From positions 9,176,001-9,240,000 of the forward strand of contig CM074514.1 of NCBI GenBank assembly GCA_037379345.1: a stretch of DNA of 64,000 nucleotides, read 5' to 3'. Below the pieces are notes generated by a model. That model was not told the DNA's origin. It did no database searches and saw nothing but the letters and a program-made list of their open reading frames with translations. Positions 1 through 61,650 of the stretch are shown piece by piece; positions within the stretch are counted from its first letter, which is position 1, and each line of letters begins with the position of its first letter. The DNA comes from Perna viridis. Its lineage: Eukaryota. The translations under genes and the position numbers were made by a program.

Positions 1-1342
1 TTATATTCAGTAGCAATATTTATACAAAGTACTATATAAGAACTTTAGCCATTGCTATTGAAATACATAAAGCATTTATCTTGCTAAATTAAAATCCTGA
101 AATTATTTTATAATAAAGTTACAAAAGTTACAAAAGTTCAAAATAAGTACTTACAATCACAGTAACAGTATATTCCAGAAAATAGTAGTTTATTAAACAG
201 ATCCAAAAAAGGCACTGATACAAGTTTTAAAAATGCACAGTTTATAAAGCAAATACAAAAACCAGATAGAACTAGATATTTTACATAAGACTACTCAAAA
301 TGTCTTAATATTAAAATTAGAAAAACTGACCATGTCTATATATGGTTATAACCTTGAGGTTTATAAAAATAGCCAAAAATTATTCTCAAATAAGGATAAA
401 CAGAAGACAGGTTAAAGTGTTCTAATTAGAATAACACTAAACATACAAAGTGAAAAACAAGGATGAAAACAGCTCACGAACTCAGTCAACTACGACCAAG
501 TTTACCTGCAATTAAATGTAGTATTAATTATCTATGTGATATAAAATAATAAAGTAATTAGTTTGCTGAAATAAAGATAAGAATGATTAATTTACAAATC
601 ATATAAAATAATCATAATCATTCTGAAATATGATAAAACAATTGTCAAGAAAAGAACACATATGTATGATAATATACATGTACATGTATGTACATATAGA
701 GGCTGCAAATTCAAAGTTTAGTTAATAATCTGAAATGGAATTGTACATTTCAAATGCAAATAAATATTTATTATATCAATGATACGAGAATTTGAACTTA
801 ATGTTGTCTGTGTCTTGTCTCTTTTCAGGTGAAGTGGTCGCAATATCATCCTCTGAGAATTGTAAACAGCAGTATCATCATCATTTCCAGACTGGGAACA
901 GCTGTCACTGCCAATGGTATGCGGTTCTTCTATATCAGCTTCAACATGCTTATCGTCTTGTTGGTGACCTTGCAAATTCATTCGGTTGTAAGTTTTTGAA
1001 TTATCTTCATCTGGTGAAACTGCATTCTCAAACACAAGACCTTTTTTTTCAACCACGCAGTATGACTTTTCTTTTTTTTTCTAATATTTATATTATTCTC
1101 AAGAATCAATTCATTGTTACATTATATACATATACATACTGTACATGTTACAAAATATGCACATACAAATATAAATTTAAGTTATATGCTTTTCCAAACT
1201 AAATGTTATTTACTGTTTTACAAGTTTAACTCTACAATTTCATGATAGAATTTTCAACGATATATTGTCACAGCATATAAAGTTATCATAGTAATGACCC
1301 AAGGTAACAATGTTCTGATTCTTAAACATTTTCTGATTCTTA

Positions 1343-1882
1343 AACATCCCTTCGGCTCCTGCGTATGGAGTGTTCATATCACAAATCATACGTTATGCCA
1401 GAGCTTGCCAAAACTACGCAGACTTTTTGTATCGCGCTAGAACTCTAACAAATAGGCTTCTGGAACAGGGTTATGTTCCTACAAGATTGAAGTCATCACT
1501 ACACATCACTACAGAAGTTTTATGGTCGTTATCATGAACTCGTGGATCGTTATGGTGTATCCATCAGCACCATGAGAACTGATTTATTCAACGGGTCATG
1601 GTTTTCCTTCCCTCGTTTGTCTACCCCGGACTTGACTTTTTATGAGCAACTCGGCGGGTGTTTCTAGAAAAGCAGAGGACGCTTACCCTACCGGTGCACC
1701 TGGTCCATGCTCCCAGTTTTTAGTGGAGCCCGAGTTGCTCATTTACTTTTGTTACTTTGTATGTATGATTTTAGTTACTTTATGTTCTTTGTTGTGTATG
1801 TCTGCTTTCCATGTCTGGTCTTTGTCCCTGGATTATATTCTTTTGATTACCGCTATAACCTTGGTTCCCTTGATTACTCTTT
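1343..1882 (+). repeat. 5' pseudo-LTR (RT C-terminus plus 3' UTR duplicated upstream of the ORF)
   Basis: Near-identical to 4788-5311; differs by a 10-nt CATCACTACA duplication, a short indel and a few substitutions. Confidence 0.92.
1644..1740 (+). ncRNA. Putative structured RNA element of the Naiad 3' UTR/pLTR
   Basis: 11-bp perfect closing stem GAGCAACTCGG/CCGAGTTGCTC, inner CGGGTG/CACCTG, palindrome TTTCTAGAAA and GCTCC/GGAGC hairpin; recurs in about 10 copies in the window. Confidence 0.55.
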
Positions 1883-1963
1883 CACACCACTGGGTCGATA
1901 CCTCTGCTGGTGGATTTTGTCCCCGAGGGTATCATCAACCCAGTAATACAATTTTTAAAATTA

Positions 1964-4900
1964 ATGGTTTTAACAAGAGTAATGAAAGAAAAACTGGCTC
2001 GGACGTCGCCCAGTATAAAAAGGTCCGAACCTGACAGCAGATCGGACAGTCTGTTGTCTTGTAAGTATGTGGTGTCCCCAGATGGGAATCTTAGCACACT
2101 CACATCTGGTATGGAAAGTGCCCCGACCAATTCAACTGAAAGTACCCAATCACACGTTCAGTCTGCAGACCATCTATTCCAGTACAAAAATTCTGACCAT
2201 TTTAAAATTATCAAACCATGTTCCATCACTTTAAACGATATATTTGACTACAACGATGACGAACCACATTGTACCATATCAAAATGTGGTATTAAAAATT
2301 GCAAAACATGCAACATTCTTATAACCGACCCTTACTTCTCCAGTTCCCTTACAAACAAAACCTTCCATACAAGAAGTCACGATGACTTAAATTGCAAATC
2401 AACAAACTTAATATATGGATTAGAATGCAACTTATGTGGTTTAATATATGTCGGAGAAACGCAAGAACGATTAAATAAAAGAATGTGCGGTCATCGTTCG
2501 GGAATTAACACCACCAAATTCCCGACAATTTATCAACAGTTTAATCAACAAGATCATTCAATCCTCTCCATGAAAGTTCGTATTTTAGAAAAAAATTTAC
2601 CATCCTACGAACAGTCCCGTTCTAAGTAAAAACTATCGTAGGGAAAGAGAGGAGTACTGGATACGCAGACTAGGTACTGCAATACCTTACGGATGCAATG
2701 ACAACATCAAAAGCATATGAAACCTTTCAAGCCAATATTACAATAACATAAATGTGATGAATTTATTTGACAAAAATCCAAGACAGGAAAGGAGTCATGG
2801 CCATCTCCACTATACGTCACCTAAGTTACATGATGTCTCCATAGATGGTCTCCTTCCTTTCATACAAAAACGTCTTGGAGTTCATCACATTGGAACCAAA
2901 CTTAATTCTATACCTCTCACTCTACTACACTCCCTTTACAAAACAAGACTTGACACTCCTGTTTCTGACCCCACCTCATCATTATACAGACTTGTTGCCA
3001 TCATTTTGGATATTGGTTTCCACAGACTCTTTAAACCAGTTTGTGTGAAAAGTCAAGATGAAGAAAAACGATCATTTCTTCCAATGTCAACAAATGTATA
3101 GGTGCAATTAATTTGGCTAACATACTCCATCATAAAAACGTTACCAACAAAATTCCCCCATATTTCAAAGACAAATCCATACCAATTATTTCATATTCCT
3201 ATACTTCACCCATCGCATCCAAAATTTTCAATTATAAAAGGCTATTGCAGAACCTCGAGATTGAGGACTTCAACGCTAAATCACCTGACTGTTCTTGCAA
3301 AACCTCTCCATTCAAATATGGTCCTTCTGGTCACGTCGTTACGGGAGATTTAACCATTATCGACAACGAATCTCTGCGTAATATCCTTTCTTCAGGTCAC
3401 AAGTACCGTGAACTACGCTCCATAAATTCGAATTATAACTTTAAAGTTCTTATGGATGCCGTCGAGGACTATGCAAGAAAATGGATAAAACGAGAACAAG
3501 AAGACATTGATTCTCTGTCAGAGTGATTAAAGGCCGTGAGGTCTTTAATTTTGAAACGAATGAAAGTTTTAAGTAGGTTAATGACTGCCAAGGCTACATC
3601 ATTTTTCAAAGACCCCGATGTAGCAAAGAGTAATCAAGGGAACAAAGGTTATAGCAAAAACATTGTCTACGAAACATGACAAATATGTTGTCGTACCAGC
3701 AGACAAAGCCCAAAACAACATTGTTTTTGTCTGCAAAACGTTTTATATCCAATATTTATTATCAGAGGTAGACGTAGAAATAATAGCAATGATAAGACCT
3801 ACACTGCTACCACTCTCTCCAAAGAGGAGATTGTGGAAAACCATAAATCTGTGCTATCCTCTTTTGGTCTCTCTACCAAGGACGATGATTGTGATTTACC
3901 GTCTATGTACTGGATTCCTTAACTTCACAAGAATCCATACAAACAACGTTTCATAGCTGGATGTGCAAAATGTACCACCAAACCTCTTTCAAAACTTTTA
4001 ACTTCTATACTCACAACTGTCAAAGAGGGTCTGCAGTCCTACCACAACACTTGTTTCACCCGTAGTGGTATTAATTCAATGTGGCTGCTGAAAAATTCTA
4101 AAGATCTTTTTGTGACATTCAGTTCAAGACTATTATCTGAATATAATAGCATTAAAACCTATGATTTTTCAACACTGTATACTTCTATTCCCCATACTCA
4201 GTTAAAATCCCGACTCAAAAAATTATACATAGTTGTTTTTCCAAAAAAGATGGTACACCTAGATACAAATATATAGTTCTTGGTAGAGATTTCTCATACT
4301 TTTTAAAGAATTATTCCAAATCATCTTCCAAATAAACAGAGGAAGATGTTTACAAAATGCTGGAATTTTTAATCGAATCGACAACATATTTGTCCAGTGT
4401 GGTGGACCTGTCTTTCAACAAACGGTCGGCATTCCAATGGGAAAAAATTGTGCTCCTTTACTTGCTGACCTATTCCTTCACTCTTATGAGGCTGACTTTA
4501 TAGCTGATCTGATCAGAAAGAAAGAATATCGTTTGGTTAGATCCTTCAATCTCAGTTTCCGCTATATAGATGACCTATTATCTTTAAACAATCCTAATTT
4601 CGGGGATTTGATACATCGCATCTACCCAAAAGAACTTGAGATAAAGGATACTACAGACACTGTGAAGTCAGCCTCATATCTTGACTTACACTTAGAAATC
4701 GATGGTAAAGGAAAAGTATTGACCAAACTTAACGATAAACGTGATGACTTTTCATTCAGAATTGTCAACTTTCCTTTCATCTGTGGCAACATCCCTTCGG
4801 CTCCTGCGTATGGAGTGTTCATATCACAACTCATACGTTATGCCAGAGCTTGCCAAAACTACGCAGACTTTTTGTATCGCGCTAGAACTCTAACAAATAG

Positions 4901-5036
4901 GCTTCTGGAACAGGGTTATGTTCCTACAAGATTGAAGTCATCACTACAGAAGTTTTATGGTCGTTATCATGAACTCGTGGATCGTTATGGTGTATCCATC
5001 AGCACCATGAGAACTGATTTATTCAACGGGTCATAG
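1964..5036 (+). pseudogene. Naiad PLE EN-RT ORF, broken by frameshifts and stops
   Basis: ORF pieces 1910-2629, 2754-3101, 3113-3526, 3663-3956, 4079-4276 and 4437-5036 join into one polyprotein starting at ATG 1964 (MVLTR). Stops fall at expected conserved residues, e.g. SLSE*, WIP*LHK. Confidence 0.9.
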
Positions 5037-5311
5037 TTTTCCTTCCATCCTTTGTCTACCCCGGACTTGACTTTTTATGAGCAACTCGGCGGGTGTCTCT
5101 AGAAAAGCAGAGGACGCTTACCCTACCGGTGCACCTGGTCCATGCTCCCAGTTTTTAGCCCGAGTTGCTCATTTACTTTTGTTACTTTGTATGTATGATT
5201 TTAGTTACTTTATGTTCTTTGTTGTGTATGTCTGCTTTCCATGTCTGGTCTTTGTCTCTATATTACATTCTTTTGATTACCGCTATAACCTTGGTTCCCT
5301 TGATTACTCTT

Positions 5312-7990
5312 TGGATACCATAAAACAAAAATAAATCATTCGGGGAAAAAAAAGCAAAAAGAAAAAAAAAAATAAAATGAAGAAAAAATAACAAAGAAGA
5401 ATAGAGAGAATGATTTTTAATAGTGAAGAAGAGAAACCTGATGATGAAATTTCTATAATTGTTTGTTTCCATGCGATGGGTATTTATTCTATCATGATAT
5501 TTTACATAATATATAATCTTATATAATAAAATTGAAACAATTCCATAAATTATCAAAATCTTCCGGTTTTTTGTTTCTTACTGCGATTGTTTTTTCAACC
5601 ATGTATAAATCTTTTAAAATATTTTGTACTGCAGAGAGGGATAACCGTTTTTTGAAATATTTGGTTGTATAGATATATTGTTTTGTTTTGAGGAAAATAA
5701 GATTGAATACCTTGCTCTTTGGTCCTCTAGAAATATCCCCAAACAGGAAGTTCTTTTTAGTTAATGGAATACTTATTCCATTGATCAAAAACCATGAATA
5801 AATTTCTGTCAGTAGATCTTGAATCTTATCACAATTCCTAAGTAAATGTTCTAAAGTCTCAATTTCCTCTCCACAGAAGGTGCAATTATCATCGTCTGTG
5901 GCATTTATTTTTTTTAAGAAACTTATTTGTTGCCAAAATTTAGTGGTTTATCCTATATTGGAGCCACTGCAATTTTGTTATCTTGGTGACCAAAAATGGA
6001 AGTTTGAAGAATTCCCCCCATTCGGATTCATCTACATTTAATATCTCATCCCATTTTCTCTGTCCATTTGGAACAAGATAATTTTTTATCAACACTGTAT
6101 ACATATCTTTTGTTCCTTTTGTGCTTTTCAAAAATAAAGCTATAGATGTCGGAATAAAAGGACAAAACGTGTTGAAATTTTCAGAAATAAATTGCATTTT
6201 GGCTTTACCTAAGGCAGACAATAAACTGTTATATTTCATAGTGTCGACAATTATATCATATTTTGCTGTACTTCTAAACGGGAAAAAATTTTTCCATCAT
6301 CCTTTAAAATATCATTGACATAACATATACCCTTTTCAAACAGCTCTTTATAAAAGATGCAATTATTATCAACTGTGATTTTTGTATTATACCATAATGG
6401 ACTTCGAATAAAATATTCCCAATTTTCATGTCCATCAATATCAATAACAATATTCCATGCTTTAAACACATCGTTCCAAAATTTATTTTTACAATTTACA
6501 GTCATTGCATATTTACTTCCACATTTCAACAAAATGTCTTTATTTACAGAATTAAATAGTATGGTGAGCATGTGTTAATCAGGGATCTTATATTTGTAAG
6601 TTTAGCATTGTAATTCATATCAGGCATATTTTCCAAGTTAACATCAAAATTAATTCCCAATAATGTGAAAGAAGTATTACCCCAAGAAAGCCTTCGCCCT
6701 GGACATAATATGTCCTCACTAAATTTTTTGCTACCCATCCAAATGACTTGAGTTTTATTAAAGTTTATCTTTAGTCCAGAAACATTTGCATACCAATCAA
6801 GTTCTTCCATGGCAGCCTTTAATGACTTTTCACTACCATCTAATATCAAAGATGTATCATCTGCATATTGTGACAGTTTGTGTGTCACTTGTGTGACTGT
6901 AATACCTGAAATATTCTCATTTCCCCGAACCTTTATGGCTAGAATCTCTGCACAAAGGATAAATAAATAGGGTGACAGAGGATCTCCCTGTCGACATCCC
7001 CGGCTTATATTAAAGAAATCAGAGATGTTTCCCCCTTGGACAATGGCTGACTTTATATTTTTATAAAATACTTTAATCATATTTATAATTGAATCACCAA
7101 AAATCAAAGAAATTCAAGACATTAAATAAGAATTTTCATGAAATTGAATCGAATGCCTTTTCAAAATCTATCAATAGTAAACGACCTGGTATATCATTCT
7201 CTTCTGTATATTGAAGCATATCATAAATCATTCTAATATTGTCTCCAATGTATCGACCACTTATAAAACCTGTTTGGTCTAGATTGATAAGTTTATCTAG
7301 GAATTTGTTTGTTCTATTAGCAATTACCCCAGAACCAATCTTATACACAGTATCCAGAAGAGTTATAGGAACTGTCTCGGTTTGTTATCTTTTGGCAGAC
7401 AAGTTATTATACCCTGTCGTTGTGTTACAGAAAGTTCACCTTGTCTAACTCCATAATTCAATAATTATACAATAAATACCTTCAAGTCCTTAAAAAATTT
7501 AAAAAAGTCCGCTGAAAACCCATCAGAACCTGGGGATTTATTGTTTTTCATATTTTTCAGTCTCACTAGCTTCAGACATTGTTATCTCCCCTTCCAAAGA
7601 CATTTTTCCTTATCAGATAATTTGTTAAAAGAGTAGTGCTCATGATCACTGTTAAGATCTTGAAAATCATAATAAGTTAATGTACTGTCTTTACATGTGT
7701 AAAGATCTTCATAAAATTTCTTAGTTTCATCTAATATATCAAACTGTTTTATTATAAGACTACCATCCTTCTTTTCAATTTTTGGTATGATTTGAAAAAT
7801 TTCTAGACTCAAGACCACAAAAGTATTTCGATGGCTTTTCCCCTTCCTCAATTCATTGTGCTCTAGCACGAATCAGGTTACCTTTCAATTTTTCCTTTCT
7901 CAAATTTTCCAACTTTTTGTTGTCTAATTCATGTATTAAGTCATCAGTTGACTGTGACTCTATTCGTTCAATATCATCAGTAAGTGGAGG
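5312..7990 (-). mobile_element. L1/Tx1-clade LINE, 5'-truncated and degenerate ORF2 (RT plus C-terminal Zn-finger region)
   Basis: Minus-strand motifs QTGFISGRYIGDNIR, DFEKAFDS, RGCRQGDPLSPYLF, SQYADDT, LQWLQYRINH and a CxxC near 5870-5885; several frameshifts. The 3' UTR probably continues at ~1066-1342 on the other side of the Naiad insertion. Confidence 0.88.
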
Positions 7991-17668: not shown

Positions 17669-18388
17669 TACCGAGGAAAATGTTTACAAAATTCTGCAAT
17701 TTTTAATCGACAACATATGTGTCCAGTGTAATGGACGCGCTTTTCAACAAGCGGTTGGCATTCCAATGGGAACAAATCGTGCTCTTTTACTAGCTGACCT
17801 ATTCCTTCACTCTTATGAGGCTGACTTTATAGCTGATCTGATCCGAAAGAAAGAATATCCTTTGCCTAGATCCTTCCATCTCAGTTTCCGCTATATAGAT
17901 GACGTATTATCTTTAAACAATCCTAATTTCGGGGATTTGATACATAGCATCTACCCCATAGATTGAGATAAAGGATACTACAGACACTGTGAAGTCAGCC
18001 ACATATCTTGACCTACACTTAGAAATCGATGGTAAAGGCAAACTATTGACCAAAATTTACGACAAACGTGATGACTTTTCATTCAAATTGTTAACATTAC
18101 TTTCATCTGTGGCAACATCCCTTCAGCACCAGCGTATGGAGTGTTCATATCACATACCCCGTACTTGACTTTTTAAGAGCAACTCGGCGGGTGATTCTAG
18201 AAAAGCAGAGGACCTTACCCTACCGGTGCACCTGGTCCATGCTCCCAGTTTTTAGTGGAGTCCGAGTTACTCATTTGCTTTTGTTACTTTGTATGTATGA
18301 TTTTAGTTACCTAATGTTGTGTATGTCTGTTTTCCATGTCTTTCTTTGTCCCTGGATTGCATTCTTTTGATTACCGCTATAACCTTGG
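17669..18388 (+). mobile_element. Naiad PLE fragment (RT core plus 3' UTR, internal deletion)
   Basis: GIPMGTN, RYIDD, YLDL motifs; 3' UTR matches 5060-5295. Confidence 0.9.
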
Positions 18389-21249: not shown

Positions 21250-21887
21250 TATCTTGACCTACACTTAGAAATCGATGGTAAGGAACTATTGACCAAATTT
21301 TACGAAAAACGTGATGACTTTTCATTCAGAATTGTCAACTTTCCTTTCATCTGTGGCAACATCCCTTCGGCTCCTGCGTATGGAGTGTTCATATCACAAC
21401 TCATGCGTTATGCCAGAGCTTGCCGAAACTACGCAGACTTTTCGTATCGCGCTAGAACTCTAACAAATAGGCTTCTGGAACAGGGTTATGTTGCTACAAG
21501 ATTGAAGTCATCACTACAGAAGTTTTATGGTCGTCATCATGAACTGGTGGATCGTTATGGTGTATCCATCAGCACCATGAAAACTGATTTATTCAACGGG
21601 TCATAGTTTTCCTTTCCTCGTTTGTCGACCCCGGACTTGACTTTTTATTAGCAACTCGGCTGGTGTTTCTAGAAAAGCTGAGGACGCTTACCCTACCGGT
21701 GCACCTGGTCCATGCTCCCAGTTTTTAGTGGAGTCCGAGTTGCTCATTTACTTTTGTTACTTTGTATGTATGATTTTAGTTACTTTATGTTCTTTGTTGT
21801 GTATGTCTGTTTTCCATGTCTGGTCTTTGTCACCTGGATTACATTCTTTTGATTACCGCTATAACCTTGGTTCCCTTGATTACTCTA
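21250..21887 (+). mobile_element. Naiad PLE 5'-truncated copy
   Basis: Matches 4676-5310 and ends at GATTACTCT. Confidence 0.92.
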
Positions 21888-26381: not shown

Positions 26382-27520
26382 GATAAACGCGATAGCTTTT
26401 TATTCCTTATTGTCAATTTTCCTTTCATTTGTGGTAACATCCCTTCAACACCGGCGTATGGCGTTTTCATATCACATACCATACTTTATGCCAGAGCTTG
26501 CTGTAACTACTTGCTAGACTTCTTACAGCAATGCTTCTGGAACAGGATAATGTTGCTACGGAAGTTGTATGGTCGTCATCAGAAACTCTTGGAATGCTAT
26601 GGTGTAACCATCTGGACTATGAAAATCGGTTTGTTCACCGATTCATATTGTACTTTCCTCTTTCGTCTACCCTTGACGTGACCTCCTATGAACAACTCGG
26701 TGGGTGTTTCTAGATTAGCAGAGGATGCTTGCCCTACCGGTGCATCTAGCAAATGCTGTAAGTTTTTATTTACTAATTTGGCTCAAACGGCCACGTAAGC
26801 TATTGCAATCAGTTGGCGTCTGTCTTGGTCGTCCATCGTCGTAACGTATTTTTTAGCTCTTCTCTTCTGACACTACCAAGCAAATTAGAACCAAAATTAG
26901 TAAGGATGTTTCTTTTTGTATTCTGTATCGAACGAATATTGGGATTTTTTATCAGTCGAAAAAGATGGCCATCACACTAAAATAGAACGTAGGAGGCAGA
27001 CAGAAGTTTTTCGCACATATCATAAAAATCGCAAGGTTTAACCCAATATTTACTACTATGAAATATTTCTGATCTGTCGAAAAACATGGCCGCCGTTTCT
27101 GAAAATAGAATAAAGAGGTCAGACAACAGTTTTTTTTTTCAAAATGGTTTGGTTAAGTCAAATTCTGACTAAAGTAAATGATTTGCATAATGGGATCTAT
27201 CTGCGGTGAAATTTTCATGTAGATCTGTTGAGCAACGTTAAAATAATTGCCCTTCTTTGATATGTTACTATAAAAATGTTCTTCTTAGTGGGAGAATTTA
27301 AAGAAAACTGATATGATTGTTCCTTAGGTATGAGCATTAGGAGAAATTTTATCAATGAAAATATACGACAGATTTTACAAAAATTTAATGTTGATTATCG
27401 AGCAATGTAAGAGATTTAGGCCCTCTAGAGCCTCTAGTTGTCCGGGGAACTCATTTACTTTACTTTTGTTTCTTTGTACATATTATTCAATTTATGTCAT
27501 GTTCTTTGGTATGTGTGTTT
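26382..27520 (+). mobile_element. Old Naiad PLE 3' fragment split by a Helentron-type insertion
   Basis: Diverged RT C-terminus and 3' UTR at 26382-26768, resuming at ~27440. Confidence 0.75.
26770..27438 (+). mobile_element. Non-autonomous Helentron-associated (HINE/DINE-like) element
   Basis: GTC-rich microsatellite-like 5' part, internal core repeats (GTCGAAAAA..ATGGCC), 3' hairpin-like segment then CTAGT end in T-rich context. Confidence 0.6.
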
Positions 27521-45660: not shown

Positions 45661-46937
45661 ATATATATATATATGGGTTGGAGCAGAGCCAATGTGAAAT
45701 CTAATCATTAATGGATGCTCATATACATTTTTTAAAAAATTATTGTTTTTGATGGTCATATTTCAAATCCATTTGATAGAAGAGAACACAAAGATAACTG
45801 TTGATGACATTCTAGATCTCTCTGGATCTTCTCAATCTGGCGTAAAGTTTACACCTAGCAATTCTTTATTGGCAGCGAAATGGAAGACCACAAATCAGTA
45901 AGGCTTACACCCTCAATGGTATTTGGTTTTTCATTATTATTTTAGGTAATAAAGGGGTAAACTACAACGAGTGTAATTGCTTCTCAGTTGTTTTAATATT
46001 AAAATGAAGAATAATAACAAAATTACCAAACTGATAAATGCTAGGCAACAGTTAAATTGAATAGTCAATAGGAAAGTCCGTATAACAAATGACAATATCA
46101 GGGTTAAAACCAGAAACCAGGAACCAAATCACTGATCCTGTCTTGGTTCATGCATTTCCGATAGAAATGGTATGTTAAACAATATTTTCTAGCCAATTAA
46201 ACCACTCGCTTTCATTTAATTTATCTTCCCCCGGTATATTTAAGGTATGAGTGGAGTGTTGGTCTGTCGTCTCAAGATTCTCCAGAAGGTTTTATTGATA
46301 CATCAACCGATCCACTGTGGAGACATTCTGGACAGAAAGCACAAGCAATATTTTGTTTAAAGCCAGATTTGTTTACGTTTTGTACTCGAAAGGAAAGCTT
46401 TGAAGTGTATAAAAAAATTATGACCAAACAAGATTTTCATAATTAAAAATTAATTCAGATAAAAAACAATAATTTTTTATCAATCATTCAGTGGCAAAGG
46501 TGATGTACGAAAGAATCAAACCTTAAACCTTCCTTGATGGTATGATTGGGTCACAGTGAACTATAAAACGATTTGTTTCCAACCCATGTCTGTTTAATTT
46601 ATTGGTCGCAACTACACAAATAATAAATGTATTGACTCTTTGCTTGCTGGACAAGAATAAAAAGAACTGTATACGTACTCCATCTTTGTTAGAGTTTGGT
46701 ATAGTAGTAATAAGAATGCTATATTTAAATCCAATGGTATCACAGTTCAATCTCGCTCTATACATGTGCATGACCGACGTGGAACCGCAGGAAGTCTAAA
46801 TTTTAAGGGTTTGTTTTTATTTTCAGGTTCCATTGTAATTGTTATGTAATTAGAAAACATATTTAGCAACGTACATTATAAAATAACTAAACGTTTGATT
46901 AAATCTACTAATATGGTCTAAGCTCCAATAAAGTAAT

Positions 46938-47295
46938 GTTGCTACAGAAATTGTATGGTCGTCATCATGAACTCGTGGATCGTTACGGTGTATTCATCTG
47001 TACTATGGGAACCGATTTGTTCACAATCAATGTCATACTTTTCTTTTCCTCTTTCGTCTTTCCCGGACTTGACATGCCCAGTGTTTCTGGAAAAGCAGAG
47101 TACGCTTACACTACCGATGTACCACGTCCATTCTTTAACTTATAGTTGAGTCCGAGTTGTTGATTTCCTTTTGCTTCTAGGTACGTGTCATTTTAGTTAT
47201 TTCATGTTCGTTGTTGTGTGTGTCTGTTTTTTTTCAGTCTGATCTTTTTCCTTGGATAACCTTCTTTTAATTTTTGCTCGATCCTTGGTTCCCTT
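46938..47295 (+). mobile_element. Diverged Naiad PLE 3' fragment
   Basis: LQKLYGRHHELVDRYGV followed by a decayed 3' UTR. Confidence 0.8.
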
Positions 47296-47827: not shown

Positions 47828-48178
47828 GAGTAATCAAGGGAACCAAGGTTATAAGGTTATAGCGGTAATCAAAAGAATATAATCCAGGGACAAAGACCAG
47901 ACATGGAAAACAGACACACACAACAAAGAACATAAAGTAACTAAAATCATACATACAAAGTAACAAAAGTAAATGAGCAACTCAGACTCCACTTAAAACT
48001 GGGAGCATGGACCAGGTGCACCGGTAGGGTAAGCGTCCTCTGCTTTTCTAGAAATACCCGCCGAGTTGCTCATAAAAAGTCAAGTCCGGGGTAGACAAAC
48101 AAGGAAAGGTAAACTATGACCCGTTGAATAAATCAGTTTTCATGGTGCAGATGGATACACCATAACGATCCACGAGTT
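47828..48178 (-). mobile_element. Naiad PLE 3' fragment
   Basis: Reverse complement of 4971-5311. Confidence 0.9.
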
Positions 48179-49149: not shown

Positions 49150-50850
49150 GAAGAGGAAATAGTCCAAAATTCAGAAAACGACAGCATCTCAATTGGAAAT
49201 ATAATTTCAAAATCATAATGGATGCTGTTAAAGATTATGCCAGATCGTGGATAAAGAAAGAAAAGGACCAAGAACCAGAAGTCAAGTACTTGCCAGATTA
49301 AATACGTACCATCCGATTGTAAGTACGGAATCGTATTGAAACTTTCAAGAAACTGGTCTCTGTAAACAACACTACATGATAAATTAGTTATCGTCCCTGT
49401 GGATAAAGCTTAAAAAACATTGTATTTGTTTGTAAAGCTCATTACCTCAGCTACCTCATAAAGTAATTGGGCACTGATACTAACACCTCAAATAATGCCA
49501 CATACAAACATACTACTTTTGACAAAGATGAAATCCTAAACAACCATAAGTCCTTCATGTCTTCCTTCACGAAACATCAAAACAAAATGTGAGAACTTGA
49601 ATCACTTGTATTGGATTCTCAAACTTCATTAGAATCCATCCAAAGAAAGGTACATAAATTGTTCTTCATCTTGCTTCACGAAAGAGATACCAATTCACCT
49701 TACAAAGATATTGTCCACAGTGAAAGATGCACAACAAGCTAGTTGAAATATTAAGACCATCTACTTTCTTAGTGGCATTAATCATATGTGGATACTTAAA
49801 AATTTTAAAGTTTTAGAAAAAAAAAATATAAAATCCAGCAGGTTTTCGGAAATTAGTTCTCTTCAAACTTTTGAGTTTTCTACACTTTACACTACGTTGC
49901 CACATGATAAATTGAAAACTCGTTTTAATGGATTTATTTGTTACTCTTTTGCTGATTAGACAAATTATGTTGTTCTTGGTTACAAATCCACATATTTATT
50001 TTTAACATCTCAGAAAAAGTGTGCTTGACTTTATCACTGATAACATATTTTTCATGTTTGGAGGATATATTTTTCAGTAAAAAGTTAGCATTCAAATTGG
50101 TACTAATTGTGCGCCTCTCCTAGTCGACTTGTAATGGTATTAAAATGAGACTGATTTTTTCAGAATCACGTAAAGAATAAAAATATAAAAGATGCGAAAT
50201 CCTTTAAATTTCATATACAGATATATTGATGTATGTATTGTCCATTAACAACCCTTCTTTTTGTAAATTGTTATCTTCAATATATCCAGCAGAACTTGAT
50301 ATAATGAGACTACCGAAACAGTTATTTTAGCCTCTTCAATTCGACTACAGTGGTCATATCTGTACTAAGATAAATAATAAAAGAGACAACTTTAGTTTTA
50401 AAGTCATAAAGTTTCCTTTCTTGCACCGCAACGAACCGTCATCTCCTGCATATGCTGTTTGAATTTCACAATTGATTCGTTACACTAGTGGAAGTACTTA
50501 CTACTCTGATTGCCTTGAACACCAAAAATATCTGCGTAATATACTCCTTAATCAGGGATACGTCTCAAAAGATCTCTTAATAAATTATTTATCTGATATC
50601 AGTCCTTGGTTGAAATTACTCAATTTATCTAAAACAATGAGTAATAGTTGCTTTTGTAGATTATTCTTTGAACTAATATGACCACTGATAAACCGATTAT
50701 GATACAATAGCATGCGAATACTATTTAATCACCACCGGGTTTTTCACGCTCCAATGGAAGAGGGGGTTGTTTTGTGCATTGTAAAACCTTGATTAGTTCA
50801 CCAATTCGTTTGAAAGGCCTGCACCAAGTAAGTTTCATTATAGTACCAGC
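49150..50850 (+). mobile_element. Old, highly degenerate Naiad-type PLE of a second subfamily
   Basis: Colinear remnants FKIIMDAVKDYARSW, VIVPVDKA, YWILKLH, MWILKN, FSTLYTTLPHDKLK, GTNCAPLLVDL, RYID, SQLIRY; its 3' UTR differs from subfamily 1. Confidence 0.8.
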
Positions 50851-51985: not shown

Positions 51986-52505
51986 TGTAATCTTTTCAAC
52001 AAACAGTCGGTATTCCAATGAGAACAAATTGTGCTCCTCTATTAGCTGGCCGATTTTTTTTCAATGTTATGAGGCTGATTTTATAGCTGATCTGATACAA
52101 AGTAAGGAACATCGTTTAGTCACATCCTTTAATCTCAGTTTCCAATATATAGATGATGCAGTGAAATAAGCCTTATATTTTGACCTACCTATTTAAGTTT
52201 ACCCTGGACTTGACTTTTTATGGACAACTCGGCAGGTGTTTCTAGAAAAAAAGCAGAGGTCCTTTACCCTATCGGTGCACCTGGGCCATGCTCCTAGTTT
52301 TGGTGCCCGTGTTTATAGAAAAGCAGAGAACGCTTACCCTACCGGTGCACCTGGTTCCTGCTCAAAGAGTCCGAGTTGTTGATTTACTTTTGTTTCTTTG
52401 CACGTATCATTTTGGTTATTTTATGTTGCTTGTTTTCCTGTCCGGTCTTTGTCCCTGAACAACGTTCTGTTGATTTCCGCTATGATCTTGACTCCTTTGA
52501 TTAGT
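51986..52505 (+). mobile_element. Naiad PLE fragment with internal deletions and a partial 3' UTR duplication
   Basis: GIPMRTNCAPLLA and QYIDD, then a UTR with AGAAAAGCAGAG...GCACCTGG present twice. Confidence 0.82.
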
Positions 52506-53999: not shown

Positions 54000-54230
54000 G
54001 AGTAATCAAAGGAACTAAGATTCTAACGAAATCAAAAGAATGTATTCCAGGGACACAGACCAGACATGGAAAACAGACAAACACAACAAAGAACATAAAG
54101 TAACTAAAATAATACATACAAAGTAACAAAAGTAAATGAGCAACTCGGACTCTACTGAAAACTGGGAGCATGGATTAGGTGCACCGGTAGGGTACGCGTC
54201 CTGTGCTTTTCTAGAAACACCCGCCGAGCT
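54000..54230 (-). mobile_element. Naiad PLE 3' UTR fragment
   Basis: Reverse complement of the UTR, from the structured element to GATTACTC. Confidence 0.85.
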
Positions 54231-55090
54231 GATCAGTATTCATGATAAATATTTGAAATCATCATCAAAATCTAACGTAGTTAAAGTTAATACTCGTAAT
54301 ATTGTAGAATGTTGCCATCAATACACAATTAAGTTTTTCAATCAATTTAAAGATCCGTCATATACTCGATACTCCGCTCATAGTCAAATCATCTGGCAAA
54401 ACACTTCTAGTGATACTGTTTTCTGCCATAGAATTAGAAAATCGTTTAGACGGATGAGCAATATGTTCAATCATACATAAACGAATACCCGATTTCGAAA
54501 TAACAGAATCAAATCTAACCATAATATAGAAATAACTTTAAGTTTTATACGCCATTTATTTTTATTCAAACACTTTTTTTTCAAATTTTCCAAGTGTTTG
54601 GTCAAAGAAATGTTCATCCATTTATTTACAGAGAATGACAAAGAAGGTTTTTGTTTATGTTATACTGAGCTTAACTGTATCGGAGGCCTATTCAAAGTAA
54701 GTACGAAATTTAAAAAAAAACCGTTCATATAACAATATATTGGATTTTAAATACAAATCTTCACCCGATGAGGAAACGACTATTGAAATGCACCAGTAAT
54801 TTTGCGTGTAGAATAATAAAGTTGGAGTGATAAATGTTATTTATCTGAAAAAAAAAATTATCTGAAAATCCAGATTATCTGCCACGATCCAACCTTGTTG
54901 CACTTGTGGTGTGGATAATTGTATAATATAAACTGTAATATACTACATATGATCTGTTGTGATATATCGTAATTATTATAATTTGTTTTGAGTAGCTGTT
55001 ATTAAAATAAAACATGCCCAAGTATAATAAAAAGTCTTTTTTTAAATTTCATAAAAGAATTATTTTTAAGGTTGAAAAAATAACTTTTTT

Positions 55091-55610
55091 AACATCCCTT
55101 CAGCACCTGCGTATGGAGTGTTCATATCACAATTCATACGTTATGCCAGAGCTTGCCGAAACGACTTTTTGTATCGCGCTAGAACTCTAATAAATAGGCT
55201 TCTGGAACAGGGTTATGTTGCTACAAGATTGAAGTCATCACTACATAAGTTTTATGGTCGTCATCATGAACTGGTGGATCGTTATGGTGTATCCATCTGC
55301 ACCATGAAAACTGATTTATTCAACGGGTCATAGTTTTCCTTTCCTCGTTTGTCTACCCCGGACTTGACTTTTTGACAACTCGGTGGGTGTTTCTAGAAAA
55401 GCAGAGGACACTTACCTTACCGGTGCACCTGGTCCATACTTCCAGTTTTTAGTGGAGTCCGAGTTGCTCATTTGCTTTTGTTACTTTGTATGTATGATTT
55501 TAGTTACTTTATGTTCTTTGTTGTGTATGTCTCTTTTCCATGTCTGGTATTTGTCCTTGGATTACATTCTTTTGATTACCGCTATAACCTTGGCTCCTTT
55601 GATTTCTCTT
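55091..55610 (+). mobile_element. Naiad PLE solo pLTR-sized copy
   Basis: Matches 4788-5311 and starts at the same AACATCCCTT as the 5' pLTR. Confidence 0.9.
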
Positions 55611-61389: not shown

Positions 61390-61650
61390 TAATTATTCTG
61401 GCGGAAATAAAAAAAATGTTATTCAGGGACAAAAACCAGACATGGAAAAAGACAAACACAGCAAAGAACATAAAATGACCAAAATAATACATACAAAGTA
61501 ACAAAAGTAAATGAGCAACTCGGCCCAACTAAAAATGCATGAACCAGGAGCACCGGTTGGGTAAGCGTCCTCTGCTTTTCTAGAAACACCTGCCGAGTTT
61601 CCCATAAAAAGTCAAGTCCGGAGTAGACGAAAGAGGAAAGGATAATAACA
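61390..61650 (-). mobile_element. Diverged Naiad PLE 3' UTR fragment
   Basis: Reverse complement of the UTR including the structured element. Confidence 0.82.

Follow-up and report, generated by a model that had tools for sequence, protein, structure and literature searches.

Minimal hammerhead ribozymes that act as dimers have been described in the pseudo-long terminal repeats (pseudo-LTRs, pLTRs) of Penelope-like elements (PLEs) that belong to the Penelope/Poseidon, Neptune and other clades (Cervera & de la Pena 2014, PMC4209133; see also Lunse et al. 2017, as cited in PMC6765202). Their dimerization is mediated by a palindromic helix III (PMC4209133), and they are thought to trim transcripts to unit length. 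Naiads, another clade of PLEs, are reported to be devoid of canonical hammerheads, and the role of hammerheads in the other endonuclease-bearing clades was left open (PMC8557442). Here we describe an RNA unit of about 100 nt from a Naiad-type element of Perna viridis. The window, i.e. the whole analysed stretch, comprises 64,000 nucleotides (GenBank assembly GCA_037379345.1, contig CM074514.1, positions 9,176,001 to 9,240,000 of the forward strand); positions below are counted from its first letter. We suggest that the unit is most likely a cis-acting plus-strand RNA which associates with itself and is probably recognised by the reverse transcriptase (RT) of the element.

The unit resembles PLE hammerheads in several respects. 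It belongs to the same class of host, lies in the pLTR and at the 3' end, and occurs twice per tandem unit. Both contain a short palindrome that needs a second copy, and both vary in sequence with compensatory changes. The construction is different. The unit has neither the CUGANGA/GAAA core nor the three-helix junction, and the Rfam hammerhead models stay blank; it consists of a closing helix, a pseudoknot and a hairpin, with palindromes of 10 and 6 nt. The hammerhead was therefore rejected as a candidate on two grounds, absence of its core strands and absence of an Rfam match either at gathering score or at E up to 10. In hammerheads of type I or the minimal PLE form, the CUGANGA and GAAA strands flank helix II, and a UH cleavage site stands ahead of helix I. 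CTGATGA was seen by eye only in locus L042, where it arises via an insertion, and no GAAA follows the hairpin P3. Rfam finds no hammerhead in the window, as expected from the first-pass annotation of this DNA, which had assigned the unit to a Naiad and stated that Naiads are described as lacking canonical hammerheads. Nor does any other known family match it. In scans with Rfam 15, nothing reached the gathering score anywhere in the window, the matches at E up to 10 on 1400-2100 were due to chance, and ten representative loci gave no relevant match. We found no description of the motif in the searched literature. The motif is undescribed in Rfam and in that literature, and it is evolutionarily conserved.

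For the final 199 residues of the RT, one protein collection contains 6,686 relatives and a second one 19,287. DNA loci were picked by RT protein homology alone (three contigs, L031-L033, and 80 metagenome contigs, L034-L113, the latter with 39-78% protein identity). An nhmmer profile of three units detected the motif at 59 of these 83 loci, with few exceptions directly 3' of the open reading frame (ORF) and on its coding strand; the covariance model R1, which was deliberately built without palindrome pairs, recovered 80 units in the loci chosen by protein homology. Recognition of a 3' untranslated region (UTR) at nucleotide level beside a protein only 50-70% identical is unusual. Comparisons included 44-88 units, whose host RTs range from 95% down to ~44% C-terminal identity to that of the window. 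Two alignments were used, A3 (44 distinct units, MAFFT) and A5 (88 model-aligned units). In two full-length distant Naiads, L174 and L177, the motif was not found with either model.

Comparison of these families shows a conserved RNA module of ~100 nt, predicted to be pseudoknotted, in the 3' UTRs and pLTRs of Naiads. Its covarying helices P1, PK and P3 bear out the earlier impression of a conserved multi-stem RNA (positions of all parts are given in Table 1). The closing helix P1 stands as a helix, with 13 bp in place of the 11 bp it had been given. Two-sided changes are seen in 11 of its 13 pairs in A3 (82% of alignment cells paired) and in 13/13 in A5. The inner helix P2, CGGGTG/CACCTG, proposed already from the window, is paired in 90-93% of cells and contains a conserved G.U pair; it is nearly invariant, none of its six pairs being changed on both sides in A3. 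As G.U outnumbers A.C in P2 (37 vs 6), the plus strand is marked. The helix PK was missed by the first reading and came out of a mutual-information scan of a larger alignment. All five of its column pairs are changed on both sides in A3, with 92% of cells paired. Where the window has GGAC/GTCC, other families have GAACT/AGTTC, GATCT/AGATC, GAGTT/AACTC and GAAAT/ATTTC, and further ones AGACT/AGTCT, AGGAT/ATCCT, ATTGC/GCAAT and GAGAC/GTCTC. Because the 5' strand of PK lies within the P2 loop and its 3' strand abuts the 3' strand of P2, the two helices together would form an H-type pseudoknot inside P1. The hairpin P3 (GCTCC/GGAGY in the first description) is likewise sustained, with two-sided changes in 3/5 pairs in A3 (70%) and 5/5 in A5, and 70-74% of cells paired.

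The model as a whole is paired in 85.1% of A3 cells, compared to 76.4% in shuffled alignments, and its covariation score is 0.298 compared to 0.157; none of 500 shuffles reached either value, and slid partners scored 0.06-0.11. In A5 the score is 0.344 vs 0.162 in shuffles. Over all structures G.U exceeds A.C by 109 to 66, which favours pairing of plus-strand RNA over a double-stranded or symmetric DNA signal. Single sequences fold only mildly better than shuffled ones (z -2.65 on the plus and -2.98 on the minus strand). As this energy is modest and alike on both strands, the case for structure rests on the family comparison. RNAalifold on A3 predicted of the 10-nt palindrome only the three outer pairs; we ascribe its weak result to decayed copies and register shifts, and the named structures were therefore counted instead. 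Two parts of the first description did not last. The small stem around ACGCTTA (AGC/GCT) shows no covariation, and A.C outnumbers G.U there 14 to 1. Its examples of retained pairing, CGGGTG to CAGGTG and GGAGC/GGAGT, change on one side only or carry little weight; it is P1, PK and the palindromes that provide the decisive covariation. An alternative GGGT/ACCC pairing was dropped, since ACCC changes to ACTC or ACCA without compensation.

The loops of the pseudoknot contain two self-complementary tracts, pal1 of 10 nt (TTTCTAGAAA in the window) and pal2 of 6 nt (ACCGGT), the latter overlooked before. In A3 all five pairs of pal1 covary and 93% of cells are paired. Other families carry at the same position the perfect palindromes TTTCATGAAA, CCACTAGTGG, CCACATGTGG, TCCTGCAGGA, TCTTATAAGA, CCGTATACGG and TGACCGGTCA. 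Distant R1 matches brought new ones, TCGCATGCGA, TTGCATGCAA, GCACTAGTGC, TCTATATAGA and TCTAATTAGA, which represent an independent test because R1 contains no palindrome pairs; one weaker match has CAACATGTTG and stays outside the following tally. When units were anchored on the GGTG ahead of the tract, 36 of 63 carried a perfect palindrome of 10 nt, with 13 different sequences among them, and a further 12 deviated by a single G.U. The chance for any 10-mer to be a perfect palindrome is ~1 in 1,000. The palindrome claimed by the first-pass annotation thus remains palindromic across families as its sequence changes.

Steps of this change can be followed. The closely related L065, L066, L068, L071 and L087 are distinguished solely by changes in the middle of pal1, and these are compensated. 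A tree from the other columns gives at least 7 switches among 7 palindrome types (20 rows with a perfect palindrome). In the genome of the window the path itself is visible, with 52 copies of TTTCTAGAAA, two of TTTCTAGAGA, which has a T.G wobble, and one of the compensated TCTCTAGAGA. Mismatches in pal1 are G.U in 14 cases and A.C in 4. In the two central columns, which are direct neighbours, 49 units have TA, 23 have AT, 4 have GC and one has CG, and only 3 of 82 are unpaired. Adjacent bases are unable to pair within one strand, and the selected duplex is therefore one with the tract of a second copy. The predicted partner of pal1 must then lie either in a separate molecule or in the other unit carried by one pLTR-flanked transcript. 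Computed self-duplexes amount to -9 to -18 kcal/mol for pal1 and ~-8.5 kcal/mol for pal2. The shorter tract obeys the same rule with less variation: 2/3 of its pairs covary, and it reads TCCGGA in most families, TCGCGA in L050, CCATGG in L046 and TTTGCAAA in L059. The pattern of substitutions shows both tracts to be under selection for self-complementarity.

In our model, the module would join two template RNAs within the ribonucleoprotein of the element and serve as recognition platform for its RT. A linked second template would allow an easy template jump, and such jumps would produce the tandem pLTR arrangement. Family-specific palindromes would keep families from cross-pairing. The module would thereby play the part that palindromic helix III has in the dimeric minimal hammerheads of other PLE clades. 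We lean, with some caution, towards this reading as a whole, namely that the unit pairs two RNA copies, serves the RT, plausibly explains template jumping and tandem pLTRs, and replaces the dimeric hammerheads. Of the roles imagined earlier for the unit, that of a dimerizing RNA has gained strong comparative support from covariation of all five pal1 pairs including the adjacent central one.

Dimerization initiation sites of retroviruses and LTR retrotransposons, e.g. SL1 of HIV-1 with its GCGCGC or GTGCAC loops, are a close parallel to such linking outside of PLEs. There, too, a palindromic tract of lineage-variable sequence lies in an RNA template for reverse transcription, and the proposed role is to link two templates and to favour template switching. 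As in those sites, the tract of the unit retains its palindromic character while the sequence changes, and at least 13 different 10-mers are perfect palindromes. The differences are that our host is a PLE which uses target-primed reverse transcription and has no capsid, that the palindromes, two instead of one, are embedded in a 3' UTR pseudoknot and not in a 5' leader hairpin loop, and that dimerization of the unit is a prediction from sequence comparison.

Several observations weigh against the proposed pairing of two RNA copies. The P2 pairing and the pseudoknot topology rest on conservation, one G.U and the adjacency of PK, not on covariation. The unpaired stretches are highly conserved, which would fit catalysis as well. 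The palindrome of the unit has no visible closed hairpin loop, unlike retroviral dimerization sites, and pal2 varies little, TCCGGA being present in most units. Many units are decayed genomic copies from metagenome contigs, and the alignment cells are not independent events. Finally, we infer the dimers, the RT binding and the transcription of the unit.

The strongest competitor is a ribozyme that cleaves itself, in all probability only in dimeric form; it would trim tandem or read-through transcripts and would be either a derived relative of twister or a new class. We consider it unlikely, and the resemblance of a sister motif to twister is what keeps it under consideration. The dimeric hammerheads of other PLEs set a precedent (PMC4209133), and further support is drawn from a sister motif, which we call type B, the unit described so far being type A. 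Type B occupies the corresponding 3' UTR site in Naiads whose RT C-terminus is ~44-59% identical to that of the window, and candidate copies are very abundant in the genome of the window. In type B, an outer stem and a G-rich strand precede one or two palindromes, after which come TAA, a C-rich strand and a pair of hairpins; the last hairpin has the loop GT(A/C)CC(A/C)AGTC. The hairpin loop GTCCCAAGTC (commonest form GTACCAAGTC) is to be compared with the twister consensus GTCCCAAGCC.

Read as a permuted twister of type P5 (Rfam clan CL00120), type B has its outer stem as P5, GGG/CCC as P2 and TAA ahead of the P2 strand, followed by P3 and P4. The two share the P3-P4 arrangement with an 8-nt P4 loop T-N-C-C-A-A-G-Y, the N/AA followed by a short P2 strand (the slash in this motif marks the putative cleavage site), and the loop pseudoknots T1 and T2, which are paired in 92% and 97% of type B, respectively; one pair of T1 covaries (GGG/CCC vs GGT/ACC). 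In twister, T1 joins CCC of the P4 loop to a GGG strand beside P1, and T2 joins GC of that loop to GC behind P2. Intramolecular P1 is missing from type B. Palindromes make up both the tract that follows T1 and the one that leads up to the putative cleavage site (ACGGCCGT and AAATCGATTT, respectively, in L175), and they stand exactly where P1 strands belong. This suggests a putative twister-like core whose P1 is made between two molecules. We hypothesize that such an intermolecular P1 would be the same trick as helix III in the minimal hammerheads of other PLEs (PMC4209133). A GGTTT/AAACC stem presenting pal1 in its loop is possible. Rfam twister models matched the last two hairpins of type B with 15.4 bits (E 0.79) and 12.8 bits (E 9.7), and such scores of 12.8-15.4 bits are far below the gathering scores of 39.9-67.2 bits; the 15 bits stand against a gathering score of 67. 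No link between twister and PLEs was found in the searched literature.

Type A has in common with type B, and with twister type P5, only the outer closing stem and the succession from G-rich strand through pal1 and pal2 to C-rich strand; in both types two self-complementary tracts replace helix P1 of twister. This shared order, the pseudoknotted fold and invariant unpaired bases are what speaks for a ribozyme in type A. Against it, type A lacks the AA after pal2 (it reads G-CACC where type B reads pal2-(T)/AA-CCC), the T1 strand and the twister loop. Its P3 loop is different, CRGTTTTTAGT, and short in distant members such as L057, and the PK helix takes the place of hairpin P3 of type B. Twister was rejected for type A, as there is no T1 strand, i.e. 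no G-rich strand after P2, no N/A-A 5' of the P2 strand and no Rfam match; no Rfam ribozyme matches type A even at E up to 10. Without these hallmarks, type A is not a twister. It may be a derivative that has kept self-association and lost or changed catalysis. That Naiads carry their own dimer-activated self-cleaving RNAs, with type B as a P5-permuted twister and type A as a pseudoknotted derivative that would still cleave, is in our opinion doubtful. Moreover, the 5' ends of 40 genomic copies form no pile-up at the motif.

Three other known RNAs were compared with type A and put aside. The core of the selenocysteine insertion sequence (SECIS) is a kink-turn with an AUGA ... GA quartet of non-Watson-Crick pairs, and it occurs in 3' UTRs of selenoprotein Naiads; in the unit, ATGA at 1642-1645 pairs canonically with TCAT at 1739-1742, and there is no Rfam SECIS match. 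Ribozymes resembling that of hepatitis delta virus have a nested double pseudoknot without an outer closing helix, while the helices here follow one another as A B C B' C' D D' A', with P1 closing the whole, and Rfam gives no match. A telomere template was considered for ACCCTA, which lies in the invariant unpaired stretch 1683-1690 and is replaced by ACCCTT in most families; agreement with the C-strand of TTAGGG telomeres extends over 5-6 nt, which by itself is too short.

A second competitor, which we regard as rather improbable, is a monomeric RT-binding platform, similar to telomerase RNA or to the 3' ends of long interspersed nuclear elements (LINEs) and R2, in which the palindromes would be small hairpins or protein contacts. 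Stringent LINEs and R2 possess folded recognition structures in their 3' UTRs, which are not known to carry selected palindromes. The unit shares with them a conserved fold in a 3' UTR and a host that relies on target-primed reverse transcription, and it is retained in 5'-truncated and internally deleted copies; there is no sequence or model similarity to them (R2 is reviewed in PMC6765202). Its location near the start of target-primed reverse transcription is in accord with a platform. So are the long invariant single-stranded stretches, one of them with ACCC, and a closing helix around a pseudoknot that recalls the core of telomerase RNA, a resemblance of topology only. The RT that might bind it is sister to telomerase reverse transcriptase, TERT (PMC8557442). 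Neither a template-like repeat nor a template boundary or triple helix of telomerase RNA is demonstrated in the unit. In pal1, covariation includes the two neighbouring bases at the centre, with complementarity in 79/82 units, which neither a hairpin nor a protein site needs, and the palindrome changes completely between families while its flanks remain fixed.

An element acting in stability, export, localization or translation of the RNA, for instance an exonuclease-resistant structure, seems to us very improbable. A three-way junction with a pseudoknot in the 3' UTR is a typical feature of viral RNAs that resist exonucleases, and the depth of contigs from sequencing runs rises ~4-fold near 1622, just 5' of P1. 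These runs are assembled contigs that are only guessed to be RNA and in which ends and strand are not visible; four of them, mapped to the element, show presence of the motif and a strong 3' bias. Over 1200-5400 the summed depth is about thousand-fold higher in the 3' UTR than in the 5' part of the element, which fits massive 5' truncation of copies and is not readable as expression. An earlier sample of copies was biased by choice of loci. In an unbiased sample, 40 genomic copies met incidentally, the 5' boundaries fall before, inside and after the motif. Ordinary 5' truncation thus explains the step near 1622, and a discrete RNA 5' end there, be it a start, a cleavage or an exonuclease stall, which the step and loose contig ends had suggested, was rejected as unsupported. 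No exonuclease-resistant RNA of Rfam matches, and the selected self-complementarity would be left unexplained.

The pLTRs of Penelope and Chlamys hold the transcription start and promoter (PMC8557442). Palindromes are typical factor sites, TTCTAGAA resembles a heat-shock element, and CACCTG is an E-box. A promoter or enhancer signal in DNA of the pseudo-LTR, with palindromes bound by dimeric transcription factors, is nevertheless the explanation to which we give least credence, because compensatory changes join positions 25-100 nt apart in P1 and PK, needlessly for DNA sites, because G.U exceeds A.C and is the intermediate towards a compensated palindrome, and because a palindrome different in every family would serve no single factor.

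We return to the element that hosts the proposed dimerizing unit. Naiads are diagnosed by an N-terminal GIY-YIG, DKA replacing DKG and a pseudo-LTR derived from a 5'-truncated upstream copy (Craig et al. 2021, PMC8557442). The element in the window carries all three and therefore belongs to the Naiad clade. GIY...YVG is found at ~2420-2447 within the ORF 1910-2629 (Pfam GIY-YIG match with E 0.0027 and 18.4 bits, under the 22.6-bit cutoff), DKA in VVVPADKAQNNIVFVCK at 3702, and the YIDD box of the RT at 4563, on the same strand downstream of GIY-YIG. The reading frame ends at 5034-5036 and is interrupted by stops, leaving open pieces of 239 aa and 199 aa only. The 540-bp repeat 1343-1885 recurs at 4788-5312 (95.6% identity between 1343-1882 and 4788-5312 in self-BLAST) and at nine further sites of the window. 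The 3' end of the element is at 1882-1886, beyond which many contigs have unrelated A/T-rich flanks. In sampled copies the 3' end is fixed and the 5' ends are scattered, as target-primed reverse transcription predicts. The unit lies wholly in the 3' UTR, ~40 nt past the RT stop and ~140 nt ahead of the 3' end. Since PLE insertions are partial tandems, a second unit is present in the upstream pseudo-LTR, and each pLTR-flanked element has two, as the first reading had it.

Some details of the element are worth recording. The stop TAG at 5034-5036 is TGG in the pLTR copy (1599-1601), and the frame of that copy therefore continues to a TAG within the palindrome. A 31-nt inverted copy of the 3' terminus (1852-1882), 96.8% identical, lies at 3625-3655 in the ORF just upstream of DKA. 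Directly 5' of the pseudo-LTR start, at 1314-1348, there is a tandem duplication of 17-18 nt (TTCTGATTCTTAAACAT twice), which might belong to a junction or 'tail' left by the insertion. The copy at 18114-18388 is internally deleted, 1343-1383 being joined to 1622-1864, and retains the whole RNA unit and tail.

The sequence of the unit at 1644-1740 is as first described. The stem word GAGCAACTCGG occurs 14 times on both strands of the window (0.15 expected) and the palindrome TTTCTAGAAA 7 times (0.18 expected). The covariance model R1 finds 11 units within the 64 kb (Table 1), i.e. every recurrence listed by the first-pass annotation and one more. The copy at 5079-5170 suffered a 5-nt deletion in P3 and one palindrome mismatch (it reads TCTCTAGAAA). 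At 52208-52380 a single P1 holds two sets of palindrome, PK strands and CACCTG, and both PK helices are still complementary through different pairs, GGTC/GGCC and GAAC/GTTC. A first pass of R1 over the whole genome (723 Mb, ~32% G+C) yielded ~150,000 rough candidates. Arrays are also present elsewhere: L081, L092, L099, L101, L113, L050, L064 and L072 contain 2-4 units per 3-kb metagenome locus, direct and inverted, the same complex pattern of tandem and inverted copies as has been described for PLEs. Many of the loci L031-L033 and L034-L113 are marine or other metagenome contigs that encode invertebrate Naiads; those assemblies evidently often include DNA from hosts or larvae.

Table 1. Parts of the RNA unit, its host element, and type A and type B units. 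Positions refer to the window unless a locus is named.
Feature	Position	Strand	Basis or remark
P1, 5' strand of the 13-bp closing helix	1642-1654	+	ATGAGCAACTCGG, pairs with 1730-1742
P2, 5' strand CGGGTG	1655-1660	+	pairs with 1697-1702
pal1, 10 nt	1661-1670	+	pair counts, palindrome tally
PK, 5' strand GGAC	1677-1680	+	mutual-information scan; pairs with 1703-1706
pal2, 6 nt	1690-1695	+	pair counts
P2, 3' strand CACCTG	1697-1702	+	pair counts
PK, 3' strand GTCC	1703-1706	+	mutual-information scan; directly adjoins P2 3' strand
P3 hairpin GCTCC/GGAGC, conserved U-rich loop	1709-1729	+	pair counts
P1, 3' strand	1730-1742	+	CCGAGTTGCTCAT
Pseudo-LTR: 5'-truncated upstream copy, last ~100 RT codons and 3' UTR	1343-1885	+	self-BLAST
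Decayed Naiad body: GIY-YIG region, DKA, RT, then 3' UTR	1886-5312	+	motif and ORF reading
Unit in pseudo-LTR (core 1642-1742)	1630-1756	+	covariance model
Unit in the element's own 3' UTR, damaged	5065-5186	+	covariance model
Unit	18163-18288	+	covariance model, 80.2 bits
Unit	21635-21758	+	covariance model, 86.6 bits
Old truncated unit	26676-26780	+	covariance model, 32.6 bits
Old unit without P1 5' arm	47062-47170	+	covariance model, 22.1 bits
Unit	47959-48085	-	covariance model, 85.7 bits
Unit with tandem inner-domain duplication	52208-52380	+	covariance model, match 52208-52317
Unit	54122-54250	-	covariance model, 72.9 bits
Unit	55357-55485	+	covariance model, 79.3 bits
Unit, diverged subfamily	61497-61617	-	covariance model, 65.9 bits
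Decayed type B copy	46122-46221	-	
Decayed type B copy	50750-50844	+	
Type B unit, 3' UTR of distant Naiad	L049:1877-1972		
Type B unit, 3' UTR of distant Naiad	L056:1970-2067		
Type B unit, 3' UTR of distant Naiad	L080:1828-1924		
Type B unit, 3' UTR of distant Naiad	L083:1369-1468		
Type B unit, 3' UTR of distant Naiad	L084:1785-1898		
Type B unit, 3' UTR of distant Naiad	L175:2410-2508		

Naiads rank with the commonest retroelements in bivalves and other invertebrates, and covariance models of the unit could annotate very many mollusc repeat copies. As a rough figure, candidates flagged by first-pass searches of this genome are on the order of 100,000. The motif is a compact natural RNA apparently built for homodimers or larger assemblies, and nature supplies it with many compensatory mutants. 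If the link of type B to twister holds, this ribozyme would be extended to a trans-assembled form inside a retrotransposon. If the units do represent a self-cleaving family, then type A would be effectively a new ribozyme architecture, and all endonuclease-bearing PLEs would share, by convergence, a need for RNA processing that depends on dimers. The comparison as it stands suggests that PLEs need two RNA copies to be joined at their pLTR and 3' end, and that cleavage may not be required. Two linked templates that favour a jump of RT from one to the other would explain the hallmark of these elements, the tandem pseudo-LTR.

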